Assembly (NCBI GenBank): GCA_030704615.1
Contig: CM060733.1
Coordinates: 47,740,001 to 47,804,000 of the forward strand
Length of the DNA stretch: 64,000 bases
Origin: Takakia lepidozioides
Lineage: Eukaryota > Plantae > Bryophyta
Reading direction: 5' to 3'
Position 1 is the first letter of the stretch; every line of letters starts with the position of its first letter. Under the pieces are notes generated by a model. The model made no database searches, was not told the origin of the DNA, and worked only from the letters and a program-made list of their open reading frames with translations. Both the position numbers and the translations under genes were made by a program. This document shows, one piece after another, positions 5,866 to 36,246 of the stretch.

Positions 5866-8090
5866 GACTCAGCGCTATCCGATGAGCCTGATGACTCCGC
5901 GCCCTTTGCCAGAGCACGTAAATGAGGCGGCGTTCCCCTAAGTCCCACAGAGCTCTCATCCAATCCCTAGGCATGACCCTCGACCTCATCCATACTAGTG
6001 CCCTGTAGTGCACTCATCCCCTCTGTGTTGGCCATGTTCTTCATGAGGGATTGCCAACCATGCTCCTTGGCTTAGTTGTACTCTACCGGAGATGGCTTCC
6101 TCTCAAATGCGCGTTGCTACACATGCCACAAATTAAAGTCAGTTCTTCGCGATAATGGAGCCAGAAGGAAGACATAACAAAATCCATAGGGAAGTACGAC
6201 TTACAAATCGCAAGATAAAACCCGTGGATCCGCCGGCGCCCCACTTGTGTGTGGATTCGTGCTTGTCAAGGCAGACTGTTGTTGCTTCACGTGCCCGGTC
6301 AAATTTGGCCTTGTTTGCGGCAGCAGTCTCTCCCGCAATGAGTGCATCCCACGATACCTATGCCCCCCCCCCCCCACACAATTAGTGAATTACACACATA
6401 CGTTGCATCGAATCCACCTCATTAATGCACATGCGACAAATGGAAGGTGACATGATTCAGGATTTGCCAACCTGTGTAATTCCATAAGGTGGTTTGGGTA
6501 TGGCCCCCTTTTCCATTGCCCTCCGAATGATCTGTCTAGCACGGTACCTCCTGTCCTTCAAGTTTCGCCCCACCATCTCCATCACCCTTGTGTCACTCCA
6601 ATTGCTCGGAAACCGGCGGTCTAACTCACGGGCATACGCCCGCTTCGCGCCAAAGTGCTGATCAGCCCACTCGATGTGCAAAGGGAACCACCTCAATGCG
6701 AGTTCAAAGGCTGGATTCTTCATAGCCTCCCAGAACGCACCGCAAGGGTCACTTTGGCGATTCACCTCCACCGGTGGCACCACAATCTTTGCCAACTCCA
6801 CGTCCTGTATCGCCAAGGCCATCCCACCCTCTCCCTTCTTTGTAGCCTCCTTCCCCTGCTCCTTTGTTACCCCACTGCCCTCCCCCGCATGCACACTCCC
6901 CTTCCTCTCCATGGGACTTCTTTTTCTTCTTCTTCTTTTCCTTCCCCTTCTCCACGACCATCTCCTTCCCCTTCCCCGCTACTTCCTCTCTCTCCTTCTC
7001 CCTCTCCCTTCTCTCTCTATCCTCGGCAGCCCCTTCATTGATGGTAAAAGGGATCTCGGGAGATCGAGGCCTCTTCTTCTTACATTTGGTGTTCGGGTCC
7101 TTCATGAACACCACGTGCTCTCCCTCATTGGCAACCCCACTGGACTGCACCAATGAGGCCAGCCATGTTGCTTCCTCCTGAAGACAAATAACCCCTCCAA
7201 ATTCAAAAAAAAGAAACAAACAACAAAGAAAATCATGCATGCAAAGGAAAGGATAAATCATGGAACAAGGTGCGACAGTTGTACCTTTGCAAGCTTGTCC
7301 GACTCGCCCCTGCTGTCACCCGATGTGGGAGGAGTCCCCATTTCCGGATGTGCCCGCTCTATCCCCTCCCAGAGCGCCACTGGAAGTAGATTCCAGATGT
7401 GGATCATAGCCGCCGCCGGCGCCCCGTAGTCCAGGCCCTTCTTTGCTGACCACTCAGGCTCAGGGGGCGGTGTCGCTGATCGGCTAGGCTGCTCTAAACC
7501 GGCCCATACCTCCTCCTCTTCCCCCCCCCCCCCCCCCAAATGTGTATCAGGGTAGAAGCCCTCACCCAGCTTGACTTCTTTGAGGCGCTTCCCTATCTTG
7601 GCCACTTCATTGGCCCTCCTCGTCTCCTCCTCCCTTGTCGACAACAATGGGCTGGCAATGGAGGCTTTCAAAGGCCCTTGAACCTGACGTTGGGCCTTTG
7701 CAAGTGCAGCCTTTGCTGCGGAGGAAGGGGTCGCTATGGGGGTGACATCCAAAAGTTGCCCATACCGGGCCCCCAAACCGGTGATGTGCTTGCCAAGGTA
7801 CATTTCACCCGTCTTGGTGGCCGGGGGTGTGCTCAACTGAGCATCCGGCTCAGCAACAACCTCCCAAATAGGAGAGCTGGTTGAGCCGGCCCCTGGCGCA
7901 TCCAAGATGTGGACAAGAGGGGGGGTACTGGCCTCGGGGGGCAGACGAGCCCTCCGGCTGCGGCTGTCGACGGGGCTGGTTAGCCGTGAGACGCCCTGGC
8001 GCGTCACACGTGCCGGTAGAGCAAACGGATTGTCCGCCCCTTTCTTTGGGGCAGGGACTTCTTCTCTTTCCCCATAAGCTGGCACCTGTC
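5866..8090 (-). pseudogene. CACTA TnpA/Ptta-like (Transposase_24-like) multi-exon gene, copy A
   Basis: Spliced exons: MPAYGEREE..., then ...FWEAMKNPAFELALRWFP...NLKDRRYRARQ...KPPYGITQ|GT, then VSWDALIAG...KFDRAREA...HESTHKWGAGG...F|GT, then QRAFERKPSPVEY. The W...HxxG...REP pattern matches En/Spm ORF2. It has premature stops, the 3' end is replaced by the LINE, and there is a close paralog at 24378-38612. Confidence 0.55.
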
Positions 8091-8419
8091 ATGCAAACCC
8101 ACAAATTGCCCTCATTAGGAACATTCCAGATCAAAAACAAAAAAAACCAAGCATGTCGGGGGCTGAGAGCAGCAAGTGCTCGGGGTCTCGAGAGGGGGAA
8201 ACAAAGAGAAAAGAAAAAGGTGGGGGGGGGGGGGGAGTGACTGAGCACCACGGGCTCAGTCGTTCCCCCCCCCCCCCCCATTTTTCTTTTTTTTGGTTTC
8301 CTGATCTCTGTCCCTCTCTCCATCTCCCTCTCTCTCTCTCTCCCTCTCTCTCCCTCCATCTTTTTTTCGCTGTTCACAAAAGTAAACAAACCACAAGGGA
8401 GAGAGGGTGCAGAAAAAGT

Positions 8420-9145
8420 TAAAAGATTGTACTCATAAGACGTTGTTTGCCGTAGCCTTGTGGCCATTGACCCCGCGCCCAGTTTGAGCGGAAACAAAAG
8501 GGACAGAACCTGCCTCTGTCAGGGGCTGACGTTGGTAGTAAGACTTACCTTCATATATAGAATTAATCTGGGTTTTCCAGATATCCTCTAGAAATCCCTT
8601 CACACAAGCATCAAACTGTTGTGTGTGATTTGCCCAATAACTAGGCCTCAGGAGGGCCTGGGCTTTTGGCTCAGCCTTGAGACTTTCAAAGTTGGTAAAC
8701 AGAGGTACAGGCACAATTCCCTTGATAGATTTGAAGAGAGCGTCTCTTTGGTGAAAGAACCCCGGACAGTGTATCAGAAAATGTGTATTGTCTTCAGATT
8801 GCCCACACAACGGGCAATTGCACTCTCCCTTTCCTCTCTGCTTCTGTTTGCTGTTCAAAGGTAGGCTTCCTGCCCTGAGTTTAAATTTCAGTCTAGTGCC
8901 GAGAGTGGGTAGACCCTTGAGGTCATCCAAGATGTCCTCCCCCATGTCACTGACTGGAAACAAGTTCAGGGAAGTTTTTTGCCTTACTTCATTTTCATCA
9001 GACAATCTCATGGCAACAGACATGGCTTTGGACACTACAGCCTCTAAGTCAGATTTATCAACCCATACTGCAGATCCATACTCCAAGGCAGGTCTAATAA
9101 TGCGACAAAGCATGGTTTTCTTAACCTCAGAGTTGACCCCTCTAC
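8420..9145 (-). mobile_element. Non-LTR retrotransposon ORF2 C-terminal module (internally deleted)
   Basis: ORF 8433-9113: IIRPALEYGSAVW (late RT/thumb motif) joined directly to LKFKLRAGSLPLN...CPLCGQSEDNTHFLIHCP (CCHC finger of RTE/L2/CR1-like ORF2). Confidence 0.75.
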
Positions 9146-10778
9146 AGAAAAAGTTAAAAAGAGAGAGGGAAGATATTCACGTCATGTCAAGACATGGACA
9201 AGACCCATAAGGGTCATTGTCAATTAAAGACATAAACAGCCCTGGATAGGGCACTATCTCACATTTCCAGTCTTGTCAAATCATCCCAAAAGACACCACC
9301 CAATCATCCAAGACAAAACAGGGTGGGAGGGCGGGGTTTGTTCTTGTGTGGGACAAGATAAGATATTGTTGTCCCTGTGCATGTTGCAAGGCCTCTTGGT
9401 TCAGCCTGTACATATACCAGCAGCTTACCAATTCAGCCATTAATTATGGCAGGTCATGCATCAGCCAAGGCATAAGGACCAGCCTGCATTTTGTCAGAAT
9501 CTCAGTATCCCACCAAGCAGTCCAACTTGATCCAAATGAAGTAGATTCCATATCATTTGTATTCACCCCGAGATATGTGATCATACAAGGTATCAAGGGA
9601 ATGTGAATGCAGCCTGTCAGATTGAAGGTTCAAGACTTGTACCAACAAACAGCATGAACAACCGAGATCCAGCCTCCTTTGTATAAAAAACAGATGGCAG
9701 GTCATAGGCCTGATGTCATGACAGATCCAAAACAGTAGGTAGGATTCCATTGCAGCTTACCATCCTCATCCTTCAGGAGTTCCATGCTAAGACATGCAAA
9801 GAACACCTTACTACGATCCAGTACACATCAGAAGTAGGCCTAACAAAGAGCAGGGCAGTACCCTACCAGGCTGCCGCCTTAAACTTCAAGGCCATCAGAT
9901 CCATAGTTACCCAAAACCGCCAAAAACATACCACCAAAAACCAGATCCTCTTTGGCCAAAATAACTTACAACCTAGCTTAGTAATCCGGAGGCTGTGCTG
10001 TCAAAGATTAAAAGGTAGGGTGTGGTTTGTATGCAAGCCTCAGGAAAGAAGCCCGTCAGGCCGAGCTGCGCATCGGCGGCAGAACGACAAAGGCCAGAAC
10101 GCAGGCTGGAGCATATCAAGTCAAGGGCAGTTGGGTTGAAATCGGGGCTGCAGCCAGCAGCCACCTCACAGCGCGCACAACCCTAGGTCTCCTCAGCCCA
10201 TATCCCAATCTGCATGCTCAAGAAACTTCAAAGTAGGTGAGGATCCTCACCTGGTCCCATCACAAGCCCCCACAAAAACCAACAGGTTAGTGAGGATTGT
10301 GGAACCCCAGGTGAATCACAGACCCTCACACTTGTCATCGATGTCAACTAAGAACCTCAAAAGCAAGAGAAAGAGATAAGAACATGAGAATCCCTAAACT
10401 CCAAAGGCACCTTAAGCGATTGGGGAAGAGGGTTATGCGCCATCACCACCCGCAGCAAGCCGCCTCCACAAAGCACATAAGCAATGAAGCAAAGCAAGCA
10501 CAAACGCAAGGCACTAGAAAAGAGGGAGAGAACTTCCCATCATAAGCATCCTTGCTAAGCACAGAAAAAGCCAGAGGAGGGAAGATGTCACTGCTTTCAT
10601 AGCGGTGTTTCCCGCTGCAAGAGAGACAAGGCGCCGCCTTCGCGCCCCCCCAGGCGCTCGTCCAGCATGGGTACGACACCACAAACGGGGCAGCCACCGA
10701 AGCACGTCCGCCATAACATTCTCCTCGTGAGCTCAGAAGCACATCGATCGCGTGCTTTTGACAGCGGGAGAGACGACA

Positions 10779-13343
10779 TAGGGTTATCCCCGATTTTTCA
10801 TCCATGGATGAAAAACGGTAGAACGAATCCATATACCCTGACGGATTTCATCCATAGCAAGGTTAAAAATAGGTTTTGGGGTAGGGGTTAGGGTTTCCAC
10901 CGTAATTAATCATAATTAGGGGTAGTAAAGATCAATTCCAAGTCATAATCACATCACCCATAGACAGCTCACTTGTGTCAGGATGAAAAAGTATGGAATA
11001 TCATCCGTGGCAGTGCCTTACCTCCATCTAGGTAATTCTATCATTCCTTTCCAAACCATCCGGTATGGATAACAAGAGTCAATAAAAGAGGAATGAAAAA
11101 TTATCACCCTGGTAGTTTTTCATCCGGTACGGATGGGAAAACAGGATGTTGTTGGCAACCTCCATAGAGGTAATTCTTTTCTTCCATGGTGACTCATCCG
11201 GTATGGATGAGAGTCAATAGAGGAGGAATGAAAAGGCCAAAAGAACCATCCTAGAGGTAATTCAATGTCCATCCTGGTGGCTCATCCGGTATGGATGAAA
11301 AAGCCTGATAGAGGAACAAAAAATCTACACTGATAGGAAACTGCCAATTCCCAGTAGAGAGGGAGACAGAGGGAGAGAGGGGGCAACAATGAAAAAAAAT
11401 GGGTTGGGGGGGGGGGGGTGTCAGATGGTGGGGTCAGCTGCAGCATATGTCCAACACCAGATATCCTAAGTTAATCGACTCTATATCTTGGAAACAGGAC
11501 CGCCCACCGACCTGTCAAACAGGCTAAGTCCTGGCAGAAGACAGTAGAAGAGATTCTCAAGGACCTGGACCTGGAACCGCAAGTCTTCACCCTACTGGAT
11601 AAATCTGACTTAGAGGCTGTAGTGTCCAACCATGTCTGTTGCCATGAGATTGTCTGATGAAAATGAAGTTCGGCAGAAAACTTCCCTGAACTTGTTTCCA
11701 GTCAGTGACATGGGGGAGGACATCTTGGATGACCTCAAGGGCTACGCACTCTCGGCACTAGACTGAAATTTAAACTCGGGGCAGGAAGCCTATCTTTGAA
11801 CAGCAAACAGAAGCAGAGAGGAAAGGGAGAGTGCAATTGCCCGTTGTGTGGGCAATCTGAAGACAGTACTCATTTTCTGATACACTGTCCGGGGTTCTCT
11901 CACCAAAGAGACGCTCTCTTTAAATCTATCAAGGGAATTGTGCATGTACCTTTGTTTACTAACTTTGAAAGTCTCCAGGCTGAGCCAAAAGCCCAGCCCC
12001 TTCTGAGGCCTAGTTTTTGGGCATCTCACACACAGCAGATTGATGCTTGTGTGAAGGGATTTGTAGAGGATATCTGGAAAACCCGGATAAATTCTATATG
12101 TGAAGGTAAGTCTTACTACCAACGTCAGCCCTTGACAGAGGTAGGATCTGTCCCTTTTGTTTCCCCAAGAAAGGGGGCAACAAAGAAATGTGGGGGGGAG
12201 GGAGTGACTGGGCAGCAGCAGCTCCTTCTGTGCTGCTCTCTTTTAAGCTCCCGACGAGGTAAATTCAAGGTCAGATGGTGGGTTCAGCTGCAACATATGT
12301 CCAACACCAGATATCTTAAATTAATCGACTCTGTATCTTGGAAACAGGACCGCCCACCGACCTGTCAAACAGGCTAAGTCCTGGTAGAAGACAGTAGAAG
12401 AGATTCTCAAGGACCTGGACCTAGAACCGCAAGTCTTCACCCTGTTGGATAAATCTGACTTAGACTCTGTAGTGTCCAACCATGTCTGTGGGCAACCTGA
12501 AGACATTATTCATTTTTTTGATACACTGTCCGGGGTTCTCTCACCAAAGAGACGCTCTCTTCAAATCTATCAAGGGAATTGTGCATGTACCTCTGTTTAC
12601 TAACTTTGAAAAAGTCGAGGCTGAGCCAAAAGCCCAGCCCCTTCTGAGGCCTAGTTTTTGGGCACTCACACACAACAGATTGATGCTTGTGTGAAGGGAT
12701 TTGTAGAGGATATCTGGAAAACCCGGATTAATTCTATATGTGAAGGTAAGTCTTACTACCAACGTCAGCCCCTGACAGAGGTAGGATCTGTCCCTTTTGT
12801 TTCCCCAAGAGAGGGGGCAACAAAGAAAAACAGAGAATGTGGGGGGGGGAGTGACAGCAGCAGCAGCTACTCAGTCACTCCCCCCCCCCCCACCTTCTTT
12901 TCTTTTCTTTGTTGCCCCCTGATGTCTCCCTCTCACTCCCTCTCTCTGTCCCTCTCTCTCCCTCTCTCCCTCTCCCTCTATAAATCTTTGGATTTCATCT
13001 GGCCTTAACTTTTTGAGGTTATTTAGTTTTTCATCCCAGCCTTTTTCATCCAAATCTGGATGATTTTATGATAGGGTGATGAAACTTAATATACAGAAAG
13101 CTGGATTTACCATCTATTTCTTTCATCTAAACTGGATGATCTACATAAATAATGGTTACCTATTATAAAATCCAAGAGAATAATAAAACTACCATCATAA
13201 ATGATGGCAGTTATTAAACCTAAGCCTATTCCATAACCCTAAAAGATACATTTCTATGGGATGTCATCCATTGACAAATTGCCTCTCTTGGTAAAATGAG
13301 ATTTTCATCCACCCTGGATGAAAAATCGGGAAGTTTTGCCCTA
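10779..13343. mobile_element. Putative non-autonomous TIR element with GGATGAAAA subterminal repeats, carrying LINE fragments
   Basis: Left end TAGGGTTATCCCCGATTTTTCATCCA; right end (reverse complement) TAGGGCAAAACTTCCCGATTTTTCATCCA. Repeat arrays at 10780-11330 and 12990-13340. No clean TSD found. Confidence 0.45.
11420..12806 (+). mobile_element. Two tandem LINE ORF2 C-terminal fragments (11420-12165, 12230-12806)
   Basis: High identity to the reverse complement of 8490-9060 (CNCPLCGQSEDSTHFLIHCP...YYQRQPLTE). The second copy has a further internal deletion at about 12490. Confidence 0.8.
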
Positions 13344-14649
13344 AGCAGGCCGACACACTTCACTGCACTGAACTCGTGCTTCAGTGAACCTTGATGATGC
13401 GTCGTATAAACCTGCTCCCCTGCTGCTACATGGTACTCGTGATGGCTGGCTCTTGGGATGCGCATTGGTGGTTAAACAGATTCTTCTCTGGCAGACGACA
13501 AAGCGGTGATCGCTTTGATCAGAAACTCATGGTTCTTTATTTTGCAGCGGCGCTTTTACTCCTTGTCGGGAAGTACTCTATCCCTATTTATCTACAGATT
13601 ACATGTTGCTCTCTTTTTGTGTATGAGCCATTCTCTATCTGTGAACGCTTCTACTCTGATTGCGTTCTGTTGGAGACGATCTGTTGGACGCCATGGCGCA
13701 GGGCATACCACAAACACTCAAGGTTTTTTGAGTTTACCCTTGCTTGAATTGTGATCTGTACTTGCTTTAGAATTCAACACTGACATGGATAGCAACTGTG
13801 AAGACCTGCCATTTACCTGCTACATCCTCACTAACACACATCGCTATGTGGTGGTTTTTGGGACGGGCACAGGTGAGGGTCTTCACTTGTCTTGATTTCT
13901 TGAAGCTTGCAGCTCCTGTTCTTGCAAATGTGGATTTTGCTGCTGCCTATGCTGCTGATGCCATTTGATTTTTCAAACTGCCACCATGCCGCTTCAGACC
14001 TGCTTCAAGATGGCTCCAATGAGGATCTGCTTCTCTCCTTACCCCTGTTTATGGTTTTTTACAACCACATTCATGTGTAGGAGTTAAGCTATGAAGGGTA
14101 CAAGGATACAAAATAGCAGTTATTACTCTGATTGCTTTGATACTTGGCTCTGAAATGAAACTTCTTGGTATGACTCTGATGGATCAAAAGGATAGGCTTT
14201 GACAGATAACACACATTCTTCAAGGCCCTCATATCATTTTTGGTTTCATGGCTTGATAACAAACAGGGGTTTCTGAGCTGCTCTTTCACCTTGGCAGAAC
14301 TATTTTATGAGGCCTTAAAATACCATTCCATGCCTATACCTGCTTAAGGGAGCTCCACCCTGCTGTTTCTTCTTCATTTTTAAGAATCTTGCTTATATCT
14401 TGGTTCTAAAACATCATCTTCAAACCAAACCTGCAATCTGGTTTTTGAAATGAGTTTGAAATGAATTTTTGAGATGATGATGCATACTATGGTGCTTTCA
14501 TGATATGAATGACCTGGGATCCCACCCTCCCGTCCTGTTTTTTCAGAGACCCTGAAATGTAATGGGGTATGCAAATGAGATTGTAAAAATGAAAGGGAAT
14601 GTTAGATGGTGCCCTGTAAAGGGTTGTTTTGTCTTTCAATGACAATGAC

Positions 14650-15145
14650 CTTAGCGGTCTTGTCCATGTCTTGACATGACATGTATATCTTCCCTCTCTT
14701 CTGTGCTGTTCTCTTTTAAGCTCCCGACACCCTAAATTCAAGGTCAGATGGTGGGTTCAGCTGCAACATATGTCCAACACCAGATATCCTAAGTTAATCG
14801 ACTCTATATCTTGGAAACAGGACCGCCCTGTCAAACAGGGTGAGCCCTGGGGAGAAGAGAGTAAAAGAGATTCTCAAGGATCTGAATCTGGACCCGCAAG
14901 ACTTGACCTTGCTGGTGACTTAGAGAGTGTAGTGTCCAAAGCCATGTGTGTTACCAGAAAATTGTCCGATGAAAATGAAGTTGGGAAGAAAACTTCCCTG
15001 AACCTGTTTCCAGTCTGTGACATGGGGGAGGACATCATGGATGCGCTCAAGGGTCTATCCCACTCTTGGCACCAGACCTAAATTTCAAGTCAGGGCAGGA
15101 AGACTACCTTTGAACAGTAAACAGAAGCAGAGAGGAAAGGGGAGT
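14650..15145 (+). mobile_element. Diverged LINE ORF2 fragment of the same family
   Basis: MSNTRYPKLIDSISWKQDRP...LSDENEVGKKTSLNLFP matches 11446-11830 and 8850-9060. Confidence 0.75.
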
Positions 15146-15531
15146 GAAATTTCCCTGACGTACCTCTGCTGCTGATGGTGCTTGAAGCGAGCTGGCACGG
15201 CGAGCTGCTGCGGTGCCTGTCGCGGCTGCCAGCGGTGCGGGTCCCCGCTGCTGCAGGGCGTCTCTCCCGCTCACCACGGCTCTCTCTCTCTCTCTCTTCA
15301 GCTCGTTAGGTCGCGCCTCTGCGCGGCGTTCCTACCACACCATCAGCCCGTAGTGTGCTTAGTAGTGTGAGCATCCTGAAGATAGAACGAGAGGAAGGAT
15401 TTATTGTCTTGGGCTCTAGCACCATAGGGATGCTCCGCCTTTGGTTACCAATTTTGAAACCCGAGGCTGAGGCATAGGGTTTTTTTGCCAACGGTTTTTG
15501 AGAAATGAAAGTGTTGGTGGTGTGTTAATTA

Positions 15532-15920
15532 GGATGGGATGGTGAGGAAACATCGACCGTCTCCCTCGAGGATGGGGAGGTAGTACCACATATCGATTGT
15601 GGCCCTAGAGCGACCATTTTTCGTGGCGAGGAGGCACCCATTGCACCTGATCCAATACAGGCTGCCGGGCACAATCGTAGAAGGGACCGGGGCCAAATTT
15701 CAGGTGATGCGGAGGATGTTGACACTCCGGGATCGAGTCGGGCGCGCCGCGGGTTGCCCCTCGCGGGCCACCCCGTCCAACCACGTCCACCTTTGAGGAT
15801 TGAGTGTTGGTGCACTAAGTGTTGGGAACGGATACCGCCGGGCGGCACCAGACCACCGAGGCGGCGACCGCATGTTGTCGAAAAACATTACAAGAAGAAC
15901 AAGATTGCGGATGCGGCAAG
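15532..15920 (+). CDS. 5' exon of CACTA gene with a transposase-associated Zn motif (CxCxxC...H)
   Basis: Open frame GWDGEETSTV...PPLRIECWCTKCWERIPPGGTRPPRRRPHVVEKHYKKNK, ending at a canonical donor AAG|GTGAGT (15921). Resembles the Transpos_assoc motif at the N-terminus of En/Spm transposases. Confidence 0.5.
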
Positions 15921-16062
15921 GTGAGTGTTTTTCCCACCCCTCTCATTAACATTCATTTAAGGTACATTTAGGTTTATCTAATAATATAGTATGATTGGTA
16001 AGCATACATGAATCAAAATTACGACATAAGTATTGATGCGTCGTTCACTACGCACATTGCAG

Positions 16063-17216
16063 CCACGACTTGATGCCCAAGCTCGCAATCACATTGCACA
16101 GGAGGCATTTCGCGCCGGTCTACTTGCAGAATTTGTGCCAGAGCATGTGCCCGATGTGACCAGTTGGTTCCCCCAGCAGCACGTAGATGAGATGCGTAGG
16201 GTCGAGGGGTATCGTAGGTGTCGTAGGCGTTATGGCCGGCGACGAGCAGGCCCCCCCCCCTCCAGTTTCCTCAGGCGGTCCCCCTGATTGTGGCCTCCCC
16301 CCCCCCCCCGTCTGTTTCTTTGCCTGATCCACCTCCGGTTGTACCTGATCCGGACGTTGTACCCCGGCTGCACCTCCGACATTACATCCTCAACCACCTC
16401 CACTTTCATCTCCTCCGCCAGCAGTACCACCTCCACCTCCACCTCCACGTGCATGTGCCCCCCGAACCCCTAGGAGGGGTCGGCTTCGCCCTAGGTTTCC
16501 TCCCCTTCGGCTTGGGCGGCCTGAGCCGGATCCTCGCCCCCGATGGGAAGCGCATAGGACTATGTTACTGAGGACCGTCCAGCCTCGTTGTTGGGGGAAT
16601 CATCTCGACCCTCCCACCCCCATCCGAGAAAATGTGGAGTTCGAGTATTGGGGGAGACGGTATGTTGTGAGCCGCTTACAGACCTGCTATGGGTCGGGGT
16701 TTATTCACGGTCAATGATATTGTGGTTCCTCCTCGGAGAAAAAATGGTGGACTTGTTTCCCTACTACGGTCCATACTACACCTCCGCGGAGTTCCGTACA
16801 TTACGCCTCGAAGCCCCATACATCCTACCCTACATTTTGTGTGTCAACGGACAGGATGTACGTAGACGGGGGTTGTCTCCCATTGAGATCAGATTTTGTG
16901 ATGGTGACCCCGACATCTTCGGCAATGTTGCTGGGCTGGTCAATAGTTCTTTTGGTCATCCTAGGAGAACCAATGTAGTATGGGACGAGCGAAGCGATGG
17001 GCATGAGAGCTTTTGTGGTCATACGTCAGTATACTGTGAGGGATGCACATGTTTGTGATGACATGTGCTAGTAGGACTATTAGGGCTGGCAGCGAACTAT
17101 TTGCATCATACGAGTTCTCCCGGGATGATTGGGACCTCCGATTACAGCGTGAGTGGGATGTGTATGATAGAAATAGGGTTCCTTTGAGACAGGGATCGCG
17201 TAGAGGGGCATTGTAG
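16063..17216 (+). CDS. SET-domain protein exon (Pro-rich linker plus SET), frameshifted in this sequence
   Basis: Across 1-2 nt frameshifts: AAYRPAMGRGLFTVNDIVVPP...DLFPYYGPYY...YILCVNG...FCDGDPDIFGNVAGLVNSS..HPRRTNVVW...MFVMTCASRTIRAGSELFASYEF...RRGAL* (TAG 17214-17216). Contains GxGLF, YxG, GNxAxxxN(S)S and IxxGxELxxxY SET motifs in the correct order. Confidence 0.75.
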
Positions 17217-18189
17217 ATATTCTCATGATGTACTTGTATACATCCGATTAATCGATTGATGTAAAATTTTTCTTGTTGCTCGTGTGGGTTGCAACTTTGC
17301 ATATGTGATCTAAACATACTTATGCACATGTGGACCAAATATGAGCTTGAACCAAGTTGATTCAATGGGTCATTCTAGTGTTGAACGCAGCTACGTGTCA
17401 TAGAGACGGAAAATTGTGTTTCGGCAGATGATTTTTTTTTATTCCATTTTCAAGCCATATGCTTAATGATAGCATATGCAATGTGTGCAAAATTTGGGAG
17501 TAAACAAAAGTCATTTGGACCCATAACCAGATTTTGTTCTCTCATTTGCACTCCAAAGTTGAGTTATCTTCAACTTCATGCACTCTTCATAGAGAGTTTT
17601 GCAAAAGTGACCCTAGAAAACACACTTATTTATTTTTCCATTTTTTTTTGTCCCATTTGTTGCATGGATGTAGTGGTGCAAAGCCCGATGTCACAGAACA
17701 AAATAGAGCTAAAAATAAAATCATTACGCCCCTCAAAAACGCAATCATATATTTTTAAATGATTTTTTTTTAAATTCGATTTAATTCAAAATTGGTGCAA
17801 GGGTGAGTGCGTCGTTGGGGAGGCTTTTTTTTTTTTTTTTTCCTGCTGGATCTTTGTACAGGTGTTGCACACATATTTAAGCACATGTAGGAAAAAATGA
17901 AGCTTGAGCCACATCCGTTTGTTGGGTGCAATGGCATGAGAGGATTTTCTTTCACATTAATAAACAAAAATTGGTTGATAGGGTGAATGCGTCATTGGGG
18001 GGGCAAATGATTTTGTTTGGGTTTGAAACTTTGCATGCGTGTACGTTGCGCACATACATGTAATTATTGAATGACATATTTGATGCACACACACATTGAA
18101 GGTTGTTGTTTGCATTTCGCTTATAATGAAGTGTATGGTTGCAAGGACACATTATAATATATGTCCCTATGTTCATTTGTTCGTATCAG

Positions 18190-21100
18190 GACTTTGTCCA
18201 TCCCTTCCCGGTCTTTTCTCTTGGCACCCCATCCGAAAACAACCCAAGTACATCAGGCGGGAGCCGGGCGAGACGCCCCCCACGGTACCGGACGATGATG
18301 ACGATGACAGTGATAGTGACAGTGACAACAACAATGAGCATGGAATTAACCAGGAGGATGTGCAAGCCATGGAGGATCTCTTAATGCATCATGTGGGCGC
18401 TGATGCATCCCATGAAGAGGGAACCCGGCCAATCGATGATCCTGAAATGGCCCCCTCAAATGACATGGAGAGGGAGGCGAGAACTCCCTTGTACGAAGGG
18501 GCGAAAGTGAGTCGACTTTCAACAATCTTACTTTTGCTCAATCTTCAAATTCGATTTGGCATAAGTAATGTTGGGATGTCTGCCATAATGCGAACTATTG
18601 CAGACTATATCCTTGCTCCACACTTGAAACCCAAGATGCCACGGTCGCGGAAAGAGGCGCGCGAAGTCTTGGACTCTGTGGGGATGGGCTATAAGATTTT
18701 TCATGCATGTCCATGTGATAAAACCCTATACTACGGAGAGGATTCGCATCTCACCAAGTGCCCAAAGTGCAAGAAAGACCGATATCGGGATGATGTCCAA
18801 GGGAAAAAAGTACCACGCAAGGTATAAGCACCATTCCCCTCGCATGAGATTATTAGAGAGTAGTACTCATGCAAGATCTGATTGTGGTTTTGGAAGGAGT
18901 GAGTGAGGAGTGGAAGGAGCGACGTTTGGTTTGACCATTCACACCCAAATGAGGGAGAGGCTGCATAAAGGGAAAGACATAAGGGTGTTGTATTATGTGT
19001 GCTAATGGGATGATTACATGTGGGGGGCGTGGGGTATTTCATCCTAGAAAATGCATTACTTTCCGATCATCCCGCGATTGAGGGCACAGTACCGAAGCCC
19101 CGAATTGGCCAGACTCATGAGATGGCACGCCTCGCATCGGAGCCCCCCGGGAAAGGTGTGCGGGCCACAAGATTCACAAGCATGGAGGCATATTGAAGAG
19201 ATGTGGCTTTTCTCTTGGAGGACCCACGACATGTCCACCTCGGCTTCTCCTCGGATGGGGTCAACCCATTCTCTGTCCAGTCATGTAGTCATTCCACTTG
19301 GCCGGTGACCATGGTGAATTACAACATCCCTCCGTATCTTTCAATTAAAAAAGGCCATATCATGTTGGCTGCCATTGTGCCAGGTGAGTGTACTCATTTC
19401 ATGTTTATTATTGCCTTCGACTTTACATTAAACTTCTGATCTTTGACGCAATTCGGATGCAAGATTGATGAGTGACATAATCATGGAGTAAGACGTGTAA
19501 TTCATTTTGTAGTATAATCTGCATATGGTGGAGCATTGAAACAATGATGTGAATGTCTCATAGGGAAAAAACAAGTGGCAAACATGGACACGTACTTGCG
19601 ACCTCTTGTTGATGAACTTAAAGAGCTATGGAGGGGGGTCCCGCATTGGATGCTTCACTTGACCCTATGGCCGGACAATTTTCAGATGAGAGGCATCTTG
19701 CTTTGGACAATGCATGATTATCCAGTATATTATGTTCCCCATGAACAACCCGCGTACATTCACTTGTCAATGCCGGATGATGAGGATTGGGATTGATTGA
19801 AGTAGCGGCGACAGTCTTGTGCACCGTAGTGGGGTAGATGGCATTATGGGCCATGCACATGACAACTTTTGTTTTTGCTAATGTGGCGGGATGTGTAGTA
19901 CAGACTAACTGTTTGCTCGGGGCTAAGCACCAAAGGGTACCATGCATGCTTGCATTGTGGCGATGATCTTGATGCACATAGCTCCCGCCATCTTCACAAG
20001 ATGGTGTATCCCAACTACCGCAAATTTCTTCCTATGAGCCATCGATGGAGAAGAAGAGAGAAACACTTGTTTGATGGCAAAGAGGAAGTACGTCCCCCCC
20101 CTATGACACCGTCCGGGCAGTTTTGGGAGGACCGATGGAAGGAGGCCATGCGGGCACGGACGGTGAAGTGGACGTGCCGGCATGAAACGACTTTCAATCT
20201 TCTACGAGTTGTCATATTGGGCGGTACATATTCCACAAAAACACCGTCAATATCCCTATGCATGCATGTGATATTGCACATTTGGTATGCGTTGCATTGT
20301 CACTTTCACGTAAAAAAAATTTGTGTAAGTCTTTGTGGGTGGGGATATATGTAGGACCTGAAGATTCGCCATCTAGATCCCATGCATATTGAGAAGAATG
20401 TCTGCTCGTCCTTTTTCGGGTTCTTCATGGCACGCCGCAAAGAAGGGAGTGGCTGCAAAAAGGAGATTCTCTCGGTGTTAGAAAGGAGCTTGAGGAGCAG
20501 GGTCGCATGCGCCATCTATGGGCCGAACAAAATGGTGTGGACCCAAAGGGTGTTGTACGGTGGAAGTATAGGCGCGCACCTTGGCAATGGACAAAGGAGG
20601 AATACAAGAAAGTGATAGCCACCATAAGTGTTGTCCGAACACCAACTGGTTATGGGTCATCCCTCCGTACGAAGTTCAGCGAAGAAGACGGGGTCCATGG
20701 TTTGAAGTCTCATGACTACCACAATCTATTGCAAGACATCTTGCCCATTGCAGTACGTGGGACATTGACTCCCGAGGTTCGTGAGACAATCTATAGATTG
20801 GGAGGCTTGTTCCGGTGGATTTGCTCCAAAGAGTTGGAAGAAGCAGATTTTCCACGCATGAAGAAGGAGGAGGCGGAGGTAATGTGTGTTGGAGATGCAC
20901 CTTCCTCCCTCCTTCTTTGACATCCAAGTGCACTTGGTAGTGCACTTAGTGGAAGAGGCTTCGATTGCCGGCCCCGTTCATTCTCGGTGGATGTACTTCC
21001 TTGAGCGTTATATGAAGACTTTGAAAGGATTTGTAAGACAAATGGCGCACCGGAGGGTAGCATGGCGGAGGGGTATACGTTGCAAGAAGCTATGTTCTAT

Positions 21101-22284
21101 TGCACGGAGTACATGGCAAGGGTGGATGAGGAATCCCCTCGGATGTGGAAGGAAGAGGAGGATGCACGAACCAAGACATCGTTTTGCCCAAAAAATCGAA
21201 GAGGGTAAAATTGCCGACCTTGGTGATTGAGCAAGCGCATGACTTCATACTGAAGAACACCCCATCCATACATGAGTGGGAGGCAAGATACAATAATCTT
21301 GTTCAGCAACGAGAGGAGGAGACGCTTGCATGGAGGCGGAACCATCCAAGGCCGGTTACTAGACGCCCACGACGAGGAGCGGGCCGCCGGAATGTTCCTT
21401 CACAAAATTTGCCCATGGAATTGCAGCCTCTAAGTTCATTCCAACAGTGGCTTCGGACTTCAGTTTATGACGCCGTTGCTCAAGGAGGTGGTTTCAGATT
21501 TGGTGCAAGACATTGCAAGGGGCCCCTCTCAATTCGCGACCTCATACACGGCGGTTTGGGTTCACGGTCGTCATTTCCGCATTCGTGCTCTTGACATGAA
21601 GCGCAAAACAACCTTTGATTCTGGCTTGTGTGCCACATATTGGCAAGACTCCGTGTGGGGCAAGGGAGATACACGACCTGCTATGAGCAAACTTGAGTAC
21701 ATTGGAGAGCTTGAGAGCATACTCCAACTTCAGTATACAAGGTACCGGCCTCTTCTCTTCAAGGGAAGGTGGTTCCAGCCACATCTTGTGGGCCCTCCGC
21801 AACACTAGTGCAAGATGATTGTGGTTTCATGCGCGTCAATGCAGATAGGCTCAACCCTACTCATCGTCCCTCCGATGAGCCTTTTTCACGGCCTTCAGAC
21901 ATGGAGCAAGTTTTTCTCCGATGACAAAACAAGAGGGGGGAATTGGAAGGTGGTTGTGCATGCTCAGCCAAGAGGAAGACGTATATCATGGTCTCGGATC
22001 TCCATGGGGTGAGGCAATTGCGGTGGACGGAGAGACTGGTCATAATGATGCTGATGATGGAGGTTGGGTAGAGGGGGTAGAAGAGGATGATGACGCCCGG
22101 ACAATGCATCCTGGACCCTAGAGAAGGAAGAGACGAAGACACGGCCATTGACAACGAGGTGGAGGATGATTCGGAGGTGCCTTTTGAGGGCCGGGCCATT
22201 TATGACGATGACTCCGATGACCAAGAAGACTTGCAGCTTGATGAGGATGAAGAGGCTCCGGATGATGATGTTCAAGTTGATTAG
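18190..22284 (+). pseudogene. CACTA transposase (Tnp2/Transposase_21 + DUF4218 + DUF4216-like), 5 exons, many 1-nt frameshifts
   Basis: Motifs: PLYEGAKVSRLS, FHACPCD...CPKC...RY, MHYFPIIPRL...LMRWH, DGVNPF...STWPV...YNIPP, YLRPLVDELKELW, WTMHDYP, LDPMHIEKNV, GLKSHDYH, FDIQVHLVVHL...GPVHSRWMYFLERYMKTLK, LFKGRW. Approximate exons: 18190-18821, 19048-19383, 19564-19725, 19903-20223, 20355-22284. Confidence 0.93.
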
Positions 22285-23265
22285 ACACAAAATCAAAGCT
22301 ACATAACAATTCTCGCACCGAACTGGACCCATCCCTTCGATTGATTGTACATGTACATGCATATTGTACTTTATTTCTATGATTCATCAAATATGGCTGT
22401 GGCTGGTAGTCTTTCAAGAAAGAAGGCAGAGGCAATGAATATGTTGGAGCAACACATACAGATGTGGTATCAAGAGAATTATCAAAATGAATGTCACAAT
22501 CTACAAGAAGGTCCACAACAACAAGCTAAACCATAAAGAAAAACAAACACCCTACCCCAGTACCATATGAAAAAAAAAAAAAACTAAGAACCCCCAAAGG
22601 CCCTAAACCTAAACCTAGAAAGCCCTGCCGTCGCCTCCTGCGACCCCACGCGTCGCCAACTGCGACGCGTTTTTGGATTTAAGGCCGGGGGTCGCAAACG
22701 GCGACGGCCAACCGTCGCCAACTGCGACCTGTTTTTTTTGAATGGATTTATGAGGCCGGGGGTCGCAAACGGCGACGGCCAGCCGTCGCAAACTGTGACA
22801 TGTTTTTTTGTTTTGAAAGAATAGGGCAGCCGGGCAGTTTGCGACGCCCGGCCGTCGCAGGGGCCTTTTGCCCTTCATGCCACCATGCGACGGCCGGGCG
22901 TCGCAAGAAAGGGCTGATGAAAGAAAAGGCAAGAAATGGTTTTTTTTTTCCGGCGTGCGACGACCGGCCGTCGCCAGAAAGGGCTGCCTTCTGCCCTTCG
23001 CTGGGGGACGCTTGGGCGTCGCACGGAAGGGCTGCCATTTCCCTTCATCATTCCGTGCGACGGCCAGGCGTCCGCCTGGCCCCGGCGCCAGGTTTCACTC
23101 CCGCGGGGTTTGGCTGCGACGGGCCCGGCGTCGCAACACGCTCCGCGGGGGGTTCGTCGCATGCTCGATGCCGTGCAGGGCGTGGGGGTGCGGCTGACGT
23201 CGCAAACCCCCCCCATTTGCTGTAGTGTGATATCAATGATGTATAAATTTAATAGCCTGGTATGG

Positions 23266-23400
23266 TATGTGGAATTGACGCCACAAGAAAAACAAAGACG
23301 GCGTTCAATGGGTTATGCTCTATTGCGGAGAAGAAGATCACATAGCATTAAACTACCCCAACAAGAGAAGATTCAAAGCTCGGGGCGCAACTCAAGTGTT
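23266..23400 (+). mobile_element. Gag C-terminal zinc-knuckle fragment of a chromovirus-type (Tcn1/sushi-like) gypsy element
   Basis: LTPQEKQRRRSMG(L)(C)LYCGEEDHIALN(Y)PNK with one frameshift; matches the LTxEEKxRR...LCLYCG..GH pattern. Confidence 0.65.
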
Positions 23401-23402
23401 CG

Positions 23403-24200
23403 CACTACAGGAAAAGGGGGACCTTTGCGACGCCCGAGCCACGCTGCAGCGTCGGGAAAACGCCCTTTTCAGGCAGGGGTTAGGCGCAGAATTTGCGACG
23501 CCAGGCCGTCGCCCGGCAGTCGCATGGGCGTCGCCAAAATGACGTCGCAAAAATGCGACGTATGGGGGTCGCGATCCCCGCCCGACTCCTGCGACTACCC
23601 GACATCGCTTTTCAGGCCGTCCGCGCCGATGGCAGGGGCCACCGTCGAGCGACGTCTCGCCGTCGCGGCCCTCCAGCCGACGGCGTTGGTGGGGCGCCGG
23701 CGCGGCGTCGCATCCTCTTTTTTTTCTAACCTGCCCGGGAGGGGAGTCCCATCATAAAACCCAAAAACACGTGGCATAAGCCGGATGGTACGCCAAGCGA
23801 CTAGGGGCGTGGCAGAAAAACAGCAGGAGCAGGAGCCAGGCTCCGTCACGCCCGGGCGTGGTTTTTGGCGTCGTTTTTTTTAATATTTATTCTTTAAAAT
23901 AAATAAATAATAAAAATGTGGCGCAGGTAGGGGTGGCGGGCTACGCGACACCAAGGCGTCGCGACTTGCGACCCCCGGACCAAAAAAACACGTCGCAGGG
24001 GGGGTTGGCGGGGGTTGCCGCCCGCAAATGGGATTGGCGACACCCGACCGTCGCGGCGTGCGACCCCCGCCAAAAAACACGTCGCATTGACGACGTCCTG
24101 TAGTCGCGAGGGCAGCCTGGTGGGGGGGGTTTGGGGGTGATTTGGGGTGAATTGGGGGTGGTTTTTTTTTTGCCTGGTTTTTTTTGGGGATGGGAGACCT
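23403..24200 (+). mobile_element. CACTA terminus with subterminal repeats (same TIR family as element 1)
   Basis: Begins CACTACAGGAAAAGGGGGACCTTTGCGACG, compared with the element 1 TIR CACTACAGCAAATGGGGGGGGTTTGCGACG. GCGAC/GTCGC array to about 24110. No matching partner end found. Confidence 0.85.
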
Positions 24201-25041
24201 TACAGTTCCATTTCTCTGATTTAGCAGGTACACAATTGAGCAAGCATGAATCGAGGGTGAGGACGGTGCGACACATGAATAAGATGAAAGATGGAAAGAT
24301 GGAAATATATTTACAGGAAATGAGCTGAAAAGCTCAAGGGTTCAGTAGGCTGACCCTAGGACCTACATGGACTAGGACTAGTCATCCTCATCCTCATCCT
24401 CAGTGGAGGACTCAGAGCTATCCGATGAGCCTGATGACTCCGCGCCCTTTGCCAGAGCACGTAAATGAGGCGGCGTTCCCCTAAGTCCCACAGAGCTCTC
24501 ATCCAATCCCTGGCCATGACCCCCGACCTCATCCGTACTAGTGCCCTGTAGTGCACTCATCCCCTCCGTGTTGGCCATGTTCTTCATGAGGGATTGCCAA
24601 CCATGCTCCTTGGTGTAGTTGTACTCTACCGGAGATGGCTTCCTCTCAAACGTGCGTTGCTACACATGCCACAAATTAAAGTCAGTTCTTCGCGATGATA
24701 GAGCCAGAAAGAAGACATAACAAAATCCATAAGGAAGTACGACTTACAAATCGCAAGATAAAACCCTTGGATCCGCCGGCGCCCCACTTGTGTGTGGATT
24801 CATGCTTGTCAAGGCGGATTGTTGTTGCTTCGCATGCCCGGTCAAATTTGGCCTTGTTTGCGGCATCAATCTCTCCTGCAATGAGTGCATCCCACGATAC
24901 ATATGCCCCCACCCCTTCCCCCCCCCCCCCCCCCCCCCCCCCAATAATTAGTGAATTACACACATACGTTGCATTGAATCCACCTCATTAATGCACATGC
25001 GACAAATGGAAGGTGACATGATTCAGGATTTGCCAACCTGT

Positions 25042-25939
25042 TATTAAAGGGCTGTTTGAGACTTAGACGCTTTTACGGGTTCTGTGGGGTACCCTTAATT
25101 TTGTGCAGACTTACAGATGGTAGACTTAGGCCACACAGGTTTAGGGGTGGTAGACAGGCTCACACAGTCAAGTCATGGATTATCACAGCCCGACACAGCC
25201 CGACACAGCTTTGCACAGCCAGTCACAGCCCGACACAGCTTTACACAGCCAGTCACAGCTCGGCACAGTTATAGCCCAACACAGTTTGGCACAGCCCGTC
25301 ACAGCGCACAGAGGGATCGGTTATCATTAGCAGGGAACTATTGTGTGGAAACGACGTCTGCAGAGGGAACATGTTACTTCAGGGGTGACAATTAGTTAGT
25401 TAGGCAGTTGGAACAGCTCGCAGGTAGTTTAGGCAGGGCAGCACCAGGTAGGGGTGACTTCACGGAGAGCGATTCTTGGTCATGCATGGGAGGAGATCAG
25501 GCGGAGAGCAAGAATGGGAGCAAGGATGGAGGAGGAAAGATGAACAGTAGATGTTTGTTACATGTAAAGCTGTAGTGATATTGTAGGGCAGATTAGAGCC
25601 ACCATGGCATTGGCCTGATACCTGATAAATCATAATCTGATACTTATTCAATACAATCACACTGTGTAGAGAGACATGAGTGAAGTTGTGGAATGAATGG
25701 ATGAGTGAATGGAACTTGGTAGATACTGAAGAAAACTGATGCTTCAATATACACAGCAAGGTAAATTGCTAACTTGAAGGCAAGAAGAAATACAAATAGG
25801 AAGCACAACCATGATTCACTAGCTATAGGTCATGACTGATTGTTCTGAGCGGGCTGAGTGCTTAGAGATATCCAACTCTTCTATCTTGGAGTTTCCACCT
25901 CGGATAGCGAAGGGATGGGTGAGTAAAAGCTGTTCGACA
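25042..25939 (+). repeat. 5' LTR
   Basis: TATTAAAGGG (TG mutated to TA) ... GTTCGACA. Aligns with 36247-37187 and contains a CACAGCC short-repeat array at about 25180-25310. Confidence 0.95.
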
Positions 25940-27299
25940 TTTGGCGACCATTATGGGGAACTGGGTCATCAACAACCAGATGTGACAGGCATCTGGTGGG
26001 ATCATGGTGGTTGGAGAATTAAAGAATTTGATGTGAATCAAATTCCCTGTGGAACTGAGAAGGAAAAATTGTCCAAACAATTCTTTCAGAGGTTCTTGGA
26101 ATTGCCAGACGGTTGTAAAGAAAATATTCTTAAGAGAGTGCATGATGCTGACCCTGAGTGGGGTCTGGAGAAAAGAGTGATAAAGATTTATCAGGTGGCC
26201 TGTAGAGGGAGAGCACGTTGGTTACCAACACTGGTTTATGTGATAGCATTGCTATCCATTAAGCGAGTAGAGTTTGAAGGCTGGGAGGAAAGAAAAGTGA
26301 ATGTTTACACTCATATGCATGAAGAGCTTGTACTGGTAAAGAATGGGATTCCTAAAGATATCATGTGGATCAAACTGACACCAAGAACGGCTTTTCAGAC
26401 GTGCTTGCCATATGGATATATGGTAACAGAGACCTCTAGTATAGCCAAGGGTGCATTGAAGCTTGAAAGAAACCGGCATATACGAGAGATACTACAGGAG
26501 AGAGTTTTGGTTATTGCCTCATTAAAGATATGAAAGACATGGGACATGAGTGATGAAAGAGAAGCTAGACTCCAGAGATATTCAGCAAAAAGAGAAAGTT
26601 GTCTGAAAGCTAATTATCCATATCTTTGGGAGAGAGGAATAGACATAGGGGAATCATCTGGACCTCTCACACCATTAAGATCAGAGAGTACATCACCCAT
26701 ACCAGAAGAACTAGAGTTGGATGCCACTCCTTCTTATTCTTTACAAGAAAGGTTAAGGGAATTGGTACAGGAAGAAGATCAGCCACGAGGGGAGAGATCT
26801 GAGGTACATCCTTGGATAAAAGATTTGACAGAAATCTTTGATAAGAGTTGGCATGGAACACCAAAAGCAGGAACTCCCAGTTCTGAACGGAGACGTAGAA
26901 GGAGGAGAGGATGTGGCAGAGCCAACGGAGAGTTCAGACTCTCCAATACCATTGCAATTGAGTTACATGAGTGAAGAGAAGAAACCCAAGGCAGAACTTG
27001 GAAGATGAAAAAAGAGAGAAGAAATTGGAAGATGAAGAGTATGAAGAAGTAGACCCAACAGTTGAGGTTGAGACTATGACCAGGACATCCCAACTTGTTG
27101 GACCTGGATCAAGTGGAGCACTTGGATCACAGGCCAACGAGGTGTCGGCTCAGGGGGATCAGGCGGGTAGCCTGGATCTGGCTCTGGGGGGACAGGGATT
27201 GTGGGAAGTAGTGCAACTGGAGCTGGTAATACTGTGAATATAGTGGGGCCAATAGCAGGGAGTGCTCAGGGGCCAGCACCTGGTGGGAGTTCCACCACT

Positions 27300-28600
27300 A
27301 CTACAACAGGTCCTCAAGGACCAGCACCAAGGGGGACCAGCACCTGCCAGTGGCAGGGGTGTAGGGCCACAGATGGCGGTACAACCAACACGGGCAAAAC
27401 CACATTTTCCAATATATGCAGGGAAAGGGGATCCTGATGTACACATAGCCAATTTGACCACATGTGTATCGTGAACAATGAAAATGGCGATGATGCCAAG
27501 ATGAGACTGTTTTCATGTTCACTTATTAAGAAAGCAAGTGAATGGTATGCAAGATTCCCTGATAATCATTTCCTGACCTGGAATGGCCTTAGTACGGCAT
27601 TCCGAAATAGGTTTAGGACAAGCAAAACTGAGGACAAAGTGTATGGAAGTTTACAACAGTTAAGGCAAAACAAGCATGAAACTGTTGAAGAGTACATGAA
27701 AAAGATTGAATTAATGATGAAAAAGCTGGCTGCTGTACCAGCACCAGGGTTACAGAAGACTTGGTTTGTGAGTGGACTAAGACCAGAGTTGCAAAAGAAA
27801 GTGGATATGCTACCCCATAATACAGTGGAGGAGGCATTTGAAACAGCTAACAGAATTGAGCAATTGGGAATGCTCAGGAGAGAGAAGAGGGATGATGAGG
27901 AGGAAGAGCAAGAGCTCAAGTTGAAGAGTAAGAAGAAGGAAAAGTTGAAGAGGGATAACTATGAGAAAAGATTGGAAGAGATCTTGAAGAAGTATGCCAC
28001 AGAGGCTGCAACACATTGGAGGAAGGGTGTTTGGTGTGCAAAATGCCAGAATGAAGGCCATACCACAGCTGAATGCCACATGAAGGAGAAACACTGTACT
28101 ATCTGTAAAATGGATAACCATTCCACTGAGAATTGTTATTACAACAGAAGGACAGCTGCAAGAGAACCTAGGCAAGTAAGGGTGCATCAAGTGCAGCCCC
28201 AGCCAAGAAGAAACAGTGATCAGGACCACTATGGTAGGCCTGGTGGTTATAACAATGGTATGGAAGGGAGAGGTAATCCAAGAGGGAATTACCAAGGCAA
28301 TCCCAAGGGCAACTATCAGGGTAATCCAAGGGGGAATTACCAGCCAGGGAATCAGGATTATAGAAATAATCCCAAAGCAGATCAAGGGCGAGGACCCAAT
28401 GGTGAAGAACTGTGTTACTATTGTAATCAGGCAGGACATCGCAAGGCAGCCTGTCCATTCTGGATTAGACACCAGAATGAGATGAGAGCTCCTGTGAATG
28501 AGGGGCCAGTGGTGGCAGCTCACATGGTTAGGCCATGTTTTGTACCAGAAGTGAGTACGATGATAGTAACCAGAAGCAAAGCAAACTAATACCTCCAGTA
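27300..28600 (+). pseudogene. gag (Retrotrans_gag plus three CCHC knuckles)
   Basis: FPIYAGKGDPDVHI; LFSCSLIKKASEWY...TWNGLSTAFRNRF; LRQNKHETVEEY; FVSGL; knuckles CAKCQNEGHTTAEC, CTICKMDNHSTENC and CYYCNQAGHRKAAC. Confidence 0.92.
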
Positions 28601-28819
28601 GATGAGGAAGATGATGATAATGAAGATGGCAGTGATTTGCCTGAAGATGATGAGGCTTGGAGAGATGAGAAGGAACTACACAAGGAAGTGGCTGATACCA
28701 TAAGGAAAATGCAGAAGAGTACTGATATCCGTATGGCAGATTCCTCTGATTCTGAAAGAGACGATGAAGTGAAGAAAGAAGCTGCACAAGTGCAGGGTAA
28801 TGAAGGGACTTTGCTGAAG

Positions 28820-36208: not shown

Positions 36209-36246
36209 ACCGTGAGGACACGGCTTTTTGAGAGGGGGAGGAATAA

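Follow-up and report, generated by a model that had tools for sequence, protein, structure and literature searches.

A SET-domain exon as probable cargo of a CACTA transposon lineage in Takakia lepidozioides

A 64-kb stretch of the genome of Takakia lepidozioides (Bryophyta; assembly GCA_030704615.1, contig CM060733.1, forward-strand positions 47,740,001 to 47,804,000), hereafter the window and numbered from its first nucleotide, was scanned for a SET-type domain, the fold of lysine methyltransferases, that had been predicted just upstream of a CACTA transposase. All motifs quoted in the original prediction were located on the plus strand between 16692 and 17111: GRGLF..DI (16692–16724), YYGPY (16765–16779), DGD..GNVAGLVNSS..N (approximately 16903–16980) and IRAGSELFASY (17079–17111), followed by a stop codon at 17214–17216. 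They are spread over three reading frames, and four colinear pieces spell one SET-type domain (copy 1, 16553–17216): 16553–16672 (P..I..WGRRYVV), 16674–16736 (GRGLF..DIVVPP), 16738–17043 (LFPYYGPYY..DGDP..GNVAGLVNSS..NVVW) and 17043–17213 (FVMTCASRTIRAGSELFASY). The first part of the SET exon (16063–16552), delimited from open reading frames (ORFs) and their translations, encodes a proline-rich linker of low complexity, in which poly-C runs occupy 16247–16311; homologues from the liverwort Riccia sorocarpa have a similar Pro/Ser-rich linker ahead of the SET domain.

Copy 1 matches a profile (A3) built from 15 intact homologues, all from outside the window. This profile finds only three places in the 64 kb, all of them beside CACTA sequence. 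Copy 1 is matched in four colinear pieces with a best E of 4e-21, and the pieces joined with an X at each break are recognised as a single domain over profile positions 84–254 (E 4e-42); apart from such joined reads, exons and frame pieces were searched separately.

Upstream of the SET exon lies a putative first coding exon (15529–15920, plus strand), identified by motif scan, with a CxCxxC...H zinc-finger motif from 15805 and a GT donor at 15921. It is separated from the SET exon by a GT..AG intron of 142 nt (15921–16062) and occupies the position of the Transposase-associated (PF13963-like) finger. On the other side, a non-coding spacer (17217–18189) leads from the SET stop to the transposase body, and would represent the rest of the first transposase intron if the finger exon is shared as proposed below.

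The exons of the Tnp2/CACTA transposase of this element (element 1; 18190–22284, plus strand) were delimited with Pfam Transposase_21, tblastn with the intact transposase of a metagenome locus (L007) and a joint at 18819|19046. Transposase_21 (PF02992) is found at 19950–20351 (E 3.9e-8), and colinear homology to the L007 transposase extends over 18420–21988. The transposase body starts approximately 1.0–1.2 kb past the SET stop on the same strand, in agreement with the predicted distance of about 1 kb. Its acidic tail is encoded by an ORF extending to 22284, and the interval 22640–23227 holds 3' subterminal repeats, composed of GCGACG..CGTCGC units, and the 3' terminal inverted repeat (TIR; reverse complement CACTACAGCAAATGGGG...); the predicted spacing of about 340 bp between transposase stop and subterminal repeats was thus about right (22284 versus ~22640). 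The subterminal region contains 27 repeat-unit matches, with 0.07 expected. Element 1 terminates at 23227 in the inverted repeat CACTACAG..., the minus-strand sequence of this end being CACTACAGCAAA.

The order of a SET domain followed by a transposase is found twice in the window. Copy 2 (56481–57119, minus strand), belonging to a divergent CACTA family, matches profile A3 with E 2.5e-13, or 1.5e-33 as an X-joined read. Directly downstream of it, Pfam and tblastn locate the Tnp2 transposase of element 2 (52633–56250, minus strand), with Transposase_21 at 54212–54670 (E 1.9e-10) and transposase homology at 56024–53098. The middle piece of copy 2 is 55% identical to that of copy 1 in protein, and DNA column identity is ~74%. 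Copy 2 is genuinely degenerate: its frame is broken twice and interrupted by two in-frame stops. The region upstream of it yielded no zinc-finger exon.

An exhaustive phmmer search with the 89-aa core of copy 1 (16738–17004) against 1.8 billion representatives returned only ten proteins (E 2e-6 to 5e-4), three of them deposited under Riccia sorocarpa. Four of the ten (P0001, P0002, P0004, and P0008) score 23.5–35.6 bits against the Pfam SET family (PF00856), above the gathering cut-off of 22.4, and many small relatives found by profile search bear a precomputed PF00856 match. The proteins of the family are 120–565 aa long, comprise a zinc finger, a linker and a SET domain, and in the Riccia genome record are labelled “SET domain-containing protein” or “hypothetical protein.” Structure prediction followed by a Foldseek search was performed for homologue P0009, whose AlphaFold2 model has a predicted local distance difference test score (pLDDT) of 68.9 and a predicted template modelling score (pTM) of 0.68. 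All 50 of the 50 matches listed from the Protein Data Bank (PDB) are SET methyltransferases at probability 1.0, including MLL1, SETD2, SETD8, EZH2, PRDM9, G9a, and LegAS4, with target-normalised TM scores of up to 0.69. The domain is assigned to the SET family, of which outside members pass the Pfam SET cut-off and one is modelled with the SET fold. A search of the protein atlas gave generic SET clusters only, and the profile search listed no named plant SET protein outside Riccia. A word-indexed, length-limited homologue search with a 102-aa core piece found no homologues because of its length window and word index, while phmmer and the profile search did find relatives.

The linkage of the SET gene to CACTA transposases was also recovered in related genomes. 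In five of the six loci L001–L006, representing five Riccia loci and one Logan contig, SET is followed by Transposase_21 on the same strand at a distance of 0.4–1 kb (L001, L002, L004, L005, and L006, i.e., four of the five Riccia loci and the Logan contig). Metagenome loci L007–L014 have the same order and carry small family members of 119–212 aa, and locus L015 ends right past its SET ORF; these nine loci were counted as two observations because they are places of two proteins, each standing for one family. In the NCBI contig L017 SET is likewise located just upstream of the transposase.

Pairwise distances of SET and transposase are strongly correlated (Mantel r 0.95, p 2e-4; nine elements, including paralogues in one genome). 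Differences between copies 1 and 2 fall on codon positions 1, 2, and 3 in the numbers 75, 72, and 118, and dN/dS between them is 0.20 (NG86) to 0.28 (LWL85), compared with about 1.4 in the two wrong frames; these values are rough because dS is saturated. Purifying selection has acted on the SET reading frame, which speaks against neutral evolution inside the elements. Overall, we consider it highly probable that the SET gene is cargo of a CACTA lineage. The prediction of a CACTA element carrying its own SET-fold gene is thus borne out by profile, fold, linkage, co-divergence and selection, although the gene does not appear to be simply a separate upstream one.

The latter view comes from the arrangement of exons. 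An ORF with the CxCxxC..H motif lies 200–500 bp upstream of SET in nine of the ten loci scanned, the window included, and such a finger lies between SET and transposase in none of the ten. In L007 the finger ORF (82 aa) resembles PF13963 with E 4e-5, which is below the gathering score. At this locus the finger exon has a phase-0 GTATGT donor; one acceptor enters the SET ORF in frame, and a second AG, matching the donor in phase, coincides exactly with the point where the transposase ORF opens. Transposase relatives at 44–47% identity encode finger and transposase core as a single ORF; for example, L016 encodes a fused finger-transposase ORF and has no SET, while L017 has a transposase ORF without finger and a SET ORF just upstream.

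Splicing of the finger exon to the SET exon is indicated by contigs of public runs. Contigs of X8 and X9, runs from different studies, join ~15920 to ~16063, and among the joints listed there is none for the DNA runs X1 and X5. The joined form, an extra A included, matches GCG-CAAAG|CCACGAC. An X8 contig of 912 nt covers 16318–17224, an X9 contig contains the joint 18819|19046 within the transposase, and the Riccia gene model P0016 has the finger-to-SET junction. The SET family appears transcribed.

Taken as a whole, the locus very likely represents an old CACTA/EnSpm lineage in which a zinc-finger first exon, a SET exon and the Tnp2 exons follow one another on the same strand. It is also probable, with less assurance, that the SET exon is intronic to the transposase gene, with the finger exon joined to SET in some transcripts and to the transposase in others; we infer this shared-exon splicing because of the phase of the L007 exons and the existence of fused relatives without SET. 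One first exon would then be joined either to SET or, past SET, to the transposase, giving two proteins with one zinc finger. Such a scheme resembles that of maize En/Spm, where TnpA and TnpD are made from one transcription unit via alternative splicing.

Several observations weigh against this picture or parts of it. A Pfam scan of six single frame pieces from the window gave zero matches; assignment of the window copies to PF00856 rests on the homologues and the family profile. A profile search of PDB sequences gave E values of 0.06 or worse, all to SET proteins, which may serve as a lead, not as proof. Riccia locus L003 contains SET and no transposase within 10 kb. The window finger exon has no Pfam match and no BLAST similarity to other finger exons, and its putative assignment rests on motif, position and splicing. 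Both X8 and X9 are runs guessed to be RNA, their spliced contigs derive from related copies rather than from copy 1, and a finger-to-transposase junction was not observed directly in the contigs. Finally, neither a CACTACAG end nor subterminal units were detected in the window upstream of 22700; with the 5' terminus of element 1 missing, a further gene may be present upstream.

A rather unlikely, still credible arrangement is that SET and transposase are two independent adjacent genes, the finger-SET protein being a second regulator similar to TnpA and the transposase working without a finger. Gene callers do annotate them as separate genes, both in Riccia and at the metagenome loci, a stop codon closes the SET exon, and the only splice seen is that from finger to SET. 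However, the transposase ORFs adjacent to SET have no start-proximal finger, while their relatives have one in the same ORF, and the L007 transposase ORF opens at an AG in phase with the finger donor.

The catalytic potential of the SET protein was assessed from motif conservation over 59 family members, the denominators being the members that cover the column. The glycines of the GxG motif are kept at G115 (39/43) and G117 (42/44), the two residues of GN in 48/55 and 55/55, the Asn at profile position 210 in 56/56 and the final Tyr in 38/39; P.G..Y, DGD, and E-L are also kept across the family. Both window copies, aligned as X-joined reads, carry these conserved residues. On the negative side, Ser takes the place of the canonical NHS His in each of the 55 members that cover the column, and the Asn of the motif is replaced by Gln in 12 of 55, which belong to the Riccia branch. 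The original prediction had pointed to the change from NH to NS and called activity uncertain; the substitution and the uncertainty both stand, while the change is a family-wide trait and not decay of this particular copy. To judge from the alignments, NH>NS is not a sign of decay, because Ser is found throughout the family and LegAS4 of Legionella, the best PDB sequence match of the profile (E 0.06), also lacks the His, having F at this position of the aligned motif YINFS. LegAS4 is an active enzyme. Since the His is always Ser and the Asn sometimes Gln, catalysis is not assured, and predicted activity of the SET protein is evenly balanced with its absence.

A real but catalytically dead SET fold, retained as a binding module or decoy that would, for example, occupy histone tails or a host methyltransferase partner, is an option that we regard as possible, though less than probable. 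It would account for the invariable loss of the NHS His and for the Gln of the Riccia branch, and agrees with the absence of Cys-rich pre- and post-SET modules and the weak PDB sequence match. Conservation of the GxG glycines, GN, N210 and the terminal Tyr over 59 members, as a working S-adenosylmethionine (SAM) pocket needs, is less expected of a dead domain, and YINFS of the active LegAS4 aligns with the NHS motif.

If the finger-SET protein is instead an active SAM-dependent lysine methyltransferase, the shared finger could bring it to the sites where the transposase acts, and methylation of histones or of the transposition machinery there could benefit the element. The full proposal, in which one unit produces two proteins with the same finger, the finger guides SET to the DNA or the transposition complex of its own element, and SET writes a mark on proteins or histones there, thereby countering silencing or limiting the element itself, and the arrangement has been kept since before the liverwort split, can be put forward only tentatively. 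An anti-silencing role specifically is more doubtful still.

It is very improbable that a single CACTA copy recently and accidentally captured a fragment of a host SET gene, by transduplication in the manner of Pack-type elements and with no function for the element. Fragments of host genes are frequently acquired by plant DNA transposons, and the window copies are broken. Nevertheless, the finger-SET-transposase order is present in two diverged families of the window, in Riccia and in unrelated contigs, no named plant SET protein besides those of Riccia was listed by the profile search, and the conserved order together with the co-divergence of SET and transposase and a dN/dS of ~0.2–0.3 rejects both recent accidental capture and neutral decay. 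Chance resemblance of non-SET motifs, for which only the absence of Pfam matches to single pieces could be cited, can be dismissed in view of the E of 4e-42 against a profile of outside homologues, the homologues that pass PF00856, one of which is modelled with a SET fold, and the restriction of profile matches in 64 kb to three places beside CACTA sequence.

SET genes as transposon cargo are already known, and the statement that SET is not a described standard cargo of CACTA elements holds only in part, as such genes have been reported in other transposons, including red-algal CACTA relatives. In the red-algal Plavaka elements of the EnSpm/CACTA superfamily, the accessory gene PAG2 combines a DNA methylase with SET (bioRxiv 10.1101/2025.02.11.637652). 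Like the elements described here, these are CACTA-superfamily transposons with a PF00856 gene as long-term cargo and a proposed role in chromatin. PAG2, compared here by description, differs in that an N6-adenine DNA methylase is joined to SET in one of three accessory genes, whereas Pfam detected no such domain (PF01555) in the window pieces or in the homologues. In addition, the SET exon described here follows a transposase-type finger exon just upstream of Tnp2 (Transposase_21), and the hosts are land plants.

HarbingerS elements, MuDR of Phytophthora and Helitrons also carry SET genes (cited in PMC12730594 and bioRxiv 10.1101/2025.02.11.637652). These are likewise DNA transposons encoding a protein of the SET histone-lysine-methyltransferase type, although they belong to other transposase superfamilies and have SET as a separate gene rather than as an exon inside the transposase unit. 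Their SET genes are reported by Kojima and Jurka in Repbase Reports (2014). En/Spm shares with the elements described here the CACTA superfamily, the subterminal repeats and, as proposed for the latter, the production of two proteins from one promoter by alternative splicing. In En/Spm, the transposase ORFs are located in the first intron of TnpA, which has no SET domain, whereas here the SET exon would be located in the first coding intron of the transposase, with the finger exon shared.

The VANC proteins of VANDAL (Mutator) elements, to which the SET protein had been likened, are anti-silencing proteins (Hosaka et al., 2017, as cited in PMC12730594). Both would be accessory proteins of transposons thought to act on the epigenetic state of their own element; there is no homology, VANC belongs to another superfamily and is not of the methyltransferase fold, and the likeness is a speculation about function. 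The LegAS4/RomA effectors of Legionella (PDB 5czy, 8sr6, and 8swi) share the motifs GxGLF, Y.G..Y, GN...YIN.S, and ..L..Y, but with an E of only 0.06 and other domains in these bacterial effectors no common descent is claimed.

In the full-text literature, from which Repbase Reports lies apart, no SET exon was found described in a land-plant CACTA element or nested behind a transposase finger exon. The present data add a land-plant CACTA lineage to those with SET cargo. Transposons carrying their own chromatin enzymes are rare to our knowledge, and represent natural experiments on the relation between mobile DNA and host silencing. Here the transposase gene probably contains the enzyme exon within it, and the DNA-targeting finger is probably common to both. 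The family lends itself to testing, with intact copies in Riccia and in metagenome contigs and with conserved motifs. It also poses a risk for annotation, because its members in the Riccia record could be mistaken for host chromatin regulators.

The frame breaks of copy 1 are located at ~16672/16674, 16737–16743, and 17039–17043. Alignment of contigs of public runs to 15800–19300 revealed that other copies of the family contain GC behind 16743, with A>C at 16742, and G behind 17039, which restore the frame at two of the three breaks. An extra A behind 15917, present in most other copies and in X5, brings the junction of the finger and SET exons in frame, and an extra C behind 19206, present in 100% of the X5 depth, closes the transposase break 19206/19221 by extending 14 nt to 15 nt, which fits a 5-residue gap exactly. 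Extra letters in X5 occur, e.g., at 15917, 17039, 17233, 17431, 17484, 18929, and 19206. Because the contigs of X5, an independent run, agree with the window without a single substitution and depart from it only by one or two added letters at a time, deletion-type errors are probable in the window assembly, and copy 1 may be less damaged than it appears. The small frameshifts said to hide the SET region are therefore present in the window, but at least two of the three are missing from other copies and, like that at 15917, may be private to copy 1 or assembly deletions. Frameshifts elsewhere in the Takakia lepidozioides assembly also call for cautious reading.

A shared, possibly programmed frameshift was suspected from the finding that both window copies shift frame before and again after GRGLF. 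Relative to an inferred GTG-AAA-GCC at the first site, 2 nt are missing from copy 1, whereas copy 2 contains an additional TG; at the second site, 2 nt are again missing from copy 1, whereas a single G is added in copy 2. With different changes at both sites, the frame events in the two copies were independent, and this candidate was rejected.

The third match of profile A3 in the window belongs to a 5'-truncated fragment (51675–52415, minus strand) that comprises the SET C terminus (YYEGMHMFVMTCAS..ELFAS) and spacer and is 80.6% identical to 17031–17763; the profile recognises a C-terminal piece at 52292–52543. Subterminal-type repeats CAGCGACCCC..GGGGTCGCTG follow it at 51640–50890, and a second copy of its spacer is present at 50224–49974. 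The whole stretch 52415–49974 (minus strand) is a 5'-truncated piece of a third CACTA family; it lies beside element 2 and may have arisen by internal deletion. Just past the stop of the element 2 transposase, an inverted repeat (52443–52595) has 67-nt arms, 81% complementary, and a 19-nt loop. A perfect 225-bp tandem duplication (58562–59011) is located upstream of copy 2 on the minus strand.

Some of the related loci contain further genes. In the intact metagenome element of L007, and also in L008, the finger-SET-transposase unit is preceded by six more ORFs that run antisense to it (1155–5637 of L007, minus strand), one of them with DUF8039; no relative of them was found in the window or in the Riccia loci. 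The Riccia locus L001 contains a Peptidase_C48 (ULP1-like) gene of 977 aa (16473–19574, minus strand) at a distance of 5 kb from the SET-CACTA copy, which may be cargo of the same or of a neighbouring element.

A second CACTA element of the same family as element 1 begins 176 bp past its end, with a 5' TIR and subterminal repeats at 23403–24107 (plus strand; CACTACAGGAAAAGGGGG...), and is cut off at ~24409. The spacer between them (23228–23402) reads like the Gag zinc-knuckle region of a retrotransposon (..YCGEEDHIALNYPNKRR..), which suggests two neighbouring CACTA insertions, with ends at 23227 and 23403, into an older retroelement. On its truncated 5' side, element 1 is abutted at 15155 by a repeat block (8420–15155) whose units of ~640–850 nt occur in both direct and inverted orientation with 83–95% identity; one unit recurs at 39908–40229 (98%). 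The whole CACTA region is bracketed by a 2.5-kb direct repeat (5866–8325 versus 24409–25041 plus 37187–38849, 90–92% identity) that may have arisen by segmental duplication or may constitute the long terminal repeats (LTRs) of a very large element. Inside this repeat sits an LTR retrotransposon (25044–37187) with LTRs of ~0.9 kb (25044–25939 and 36249–37187, 90% identical) and ORFs for gag, zinc knuckle, reverse transcriptase and RNase H at 27462–30871. A host gene at 60792–63857 (plus strand) encodes a xylanase-inhibitor-like aspartic protease, with a weak TAXi_N match and TAXi_C at E 7e-26.

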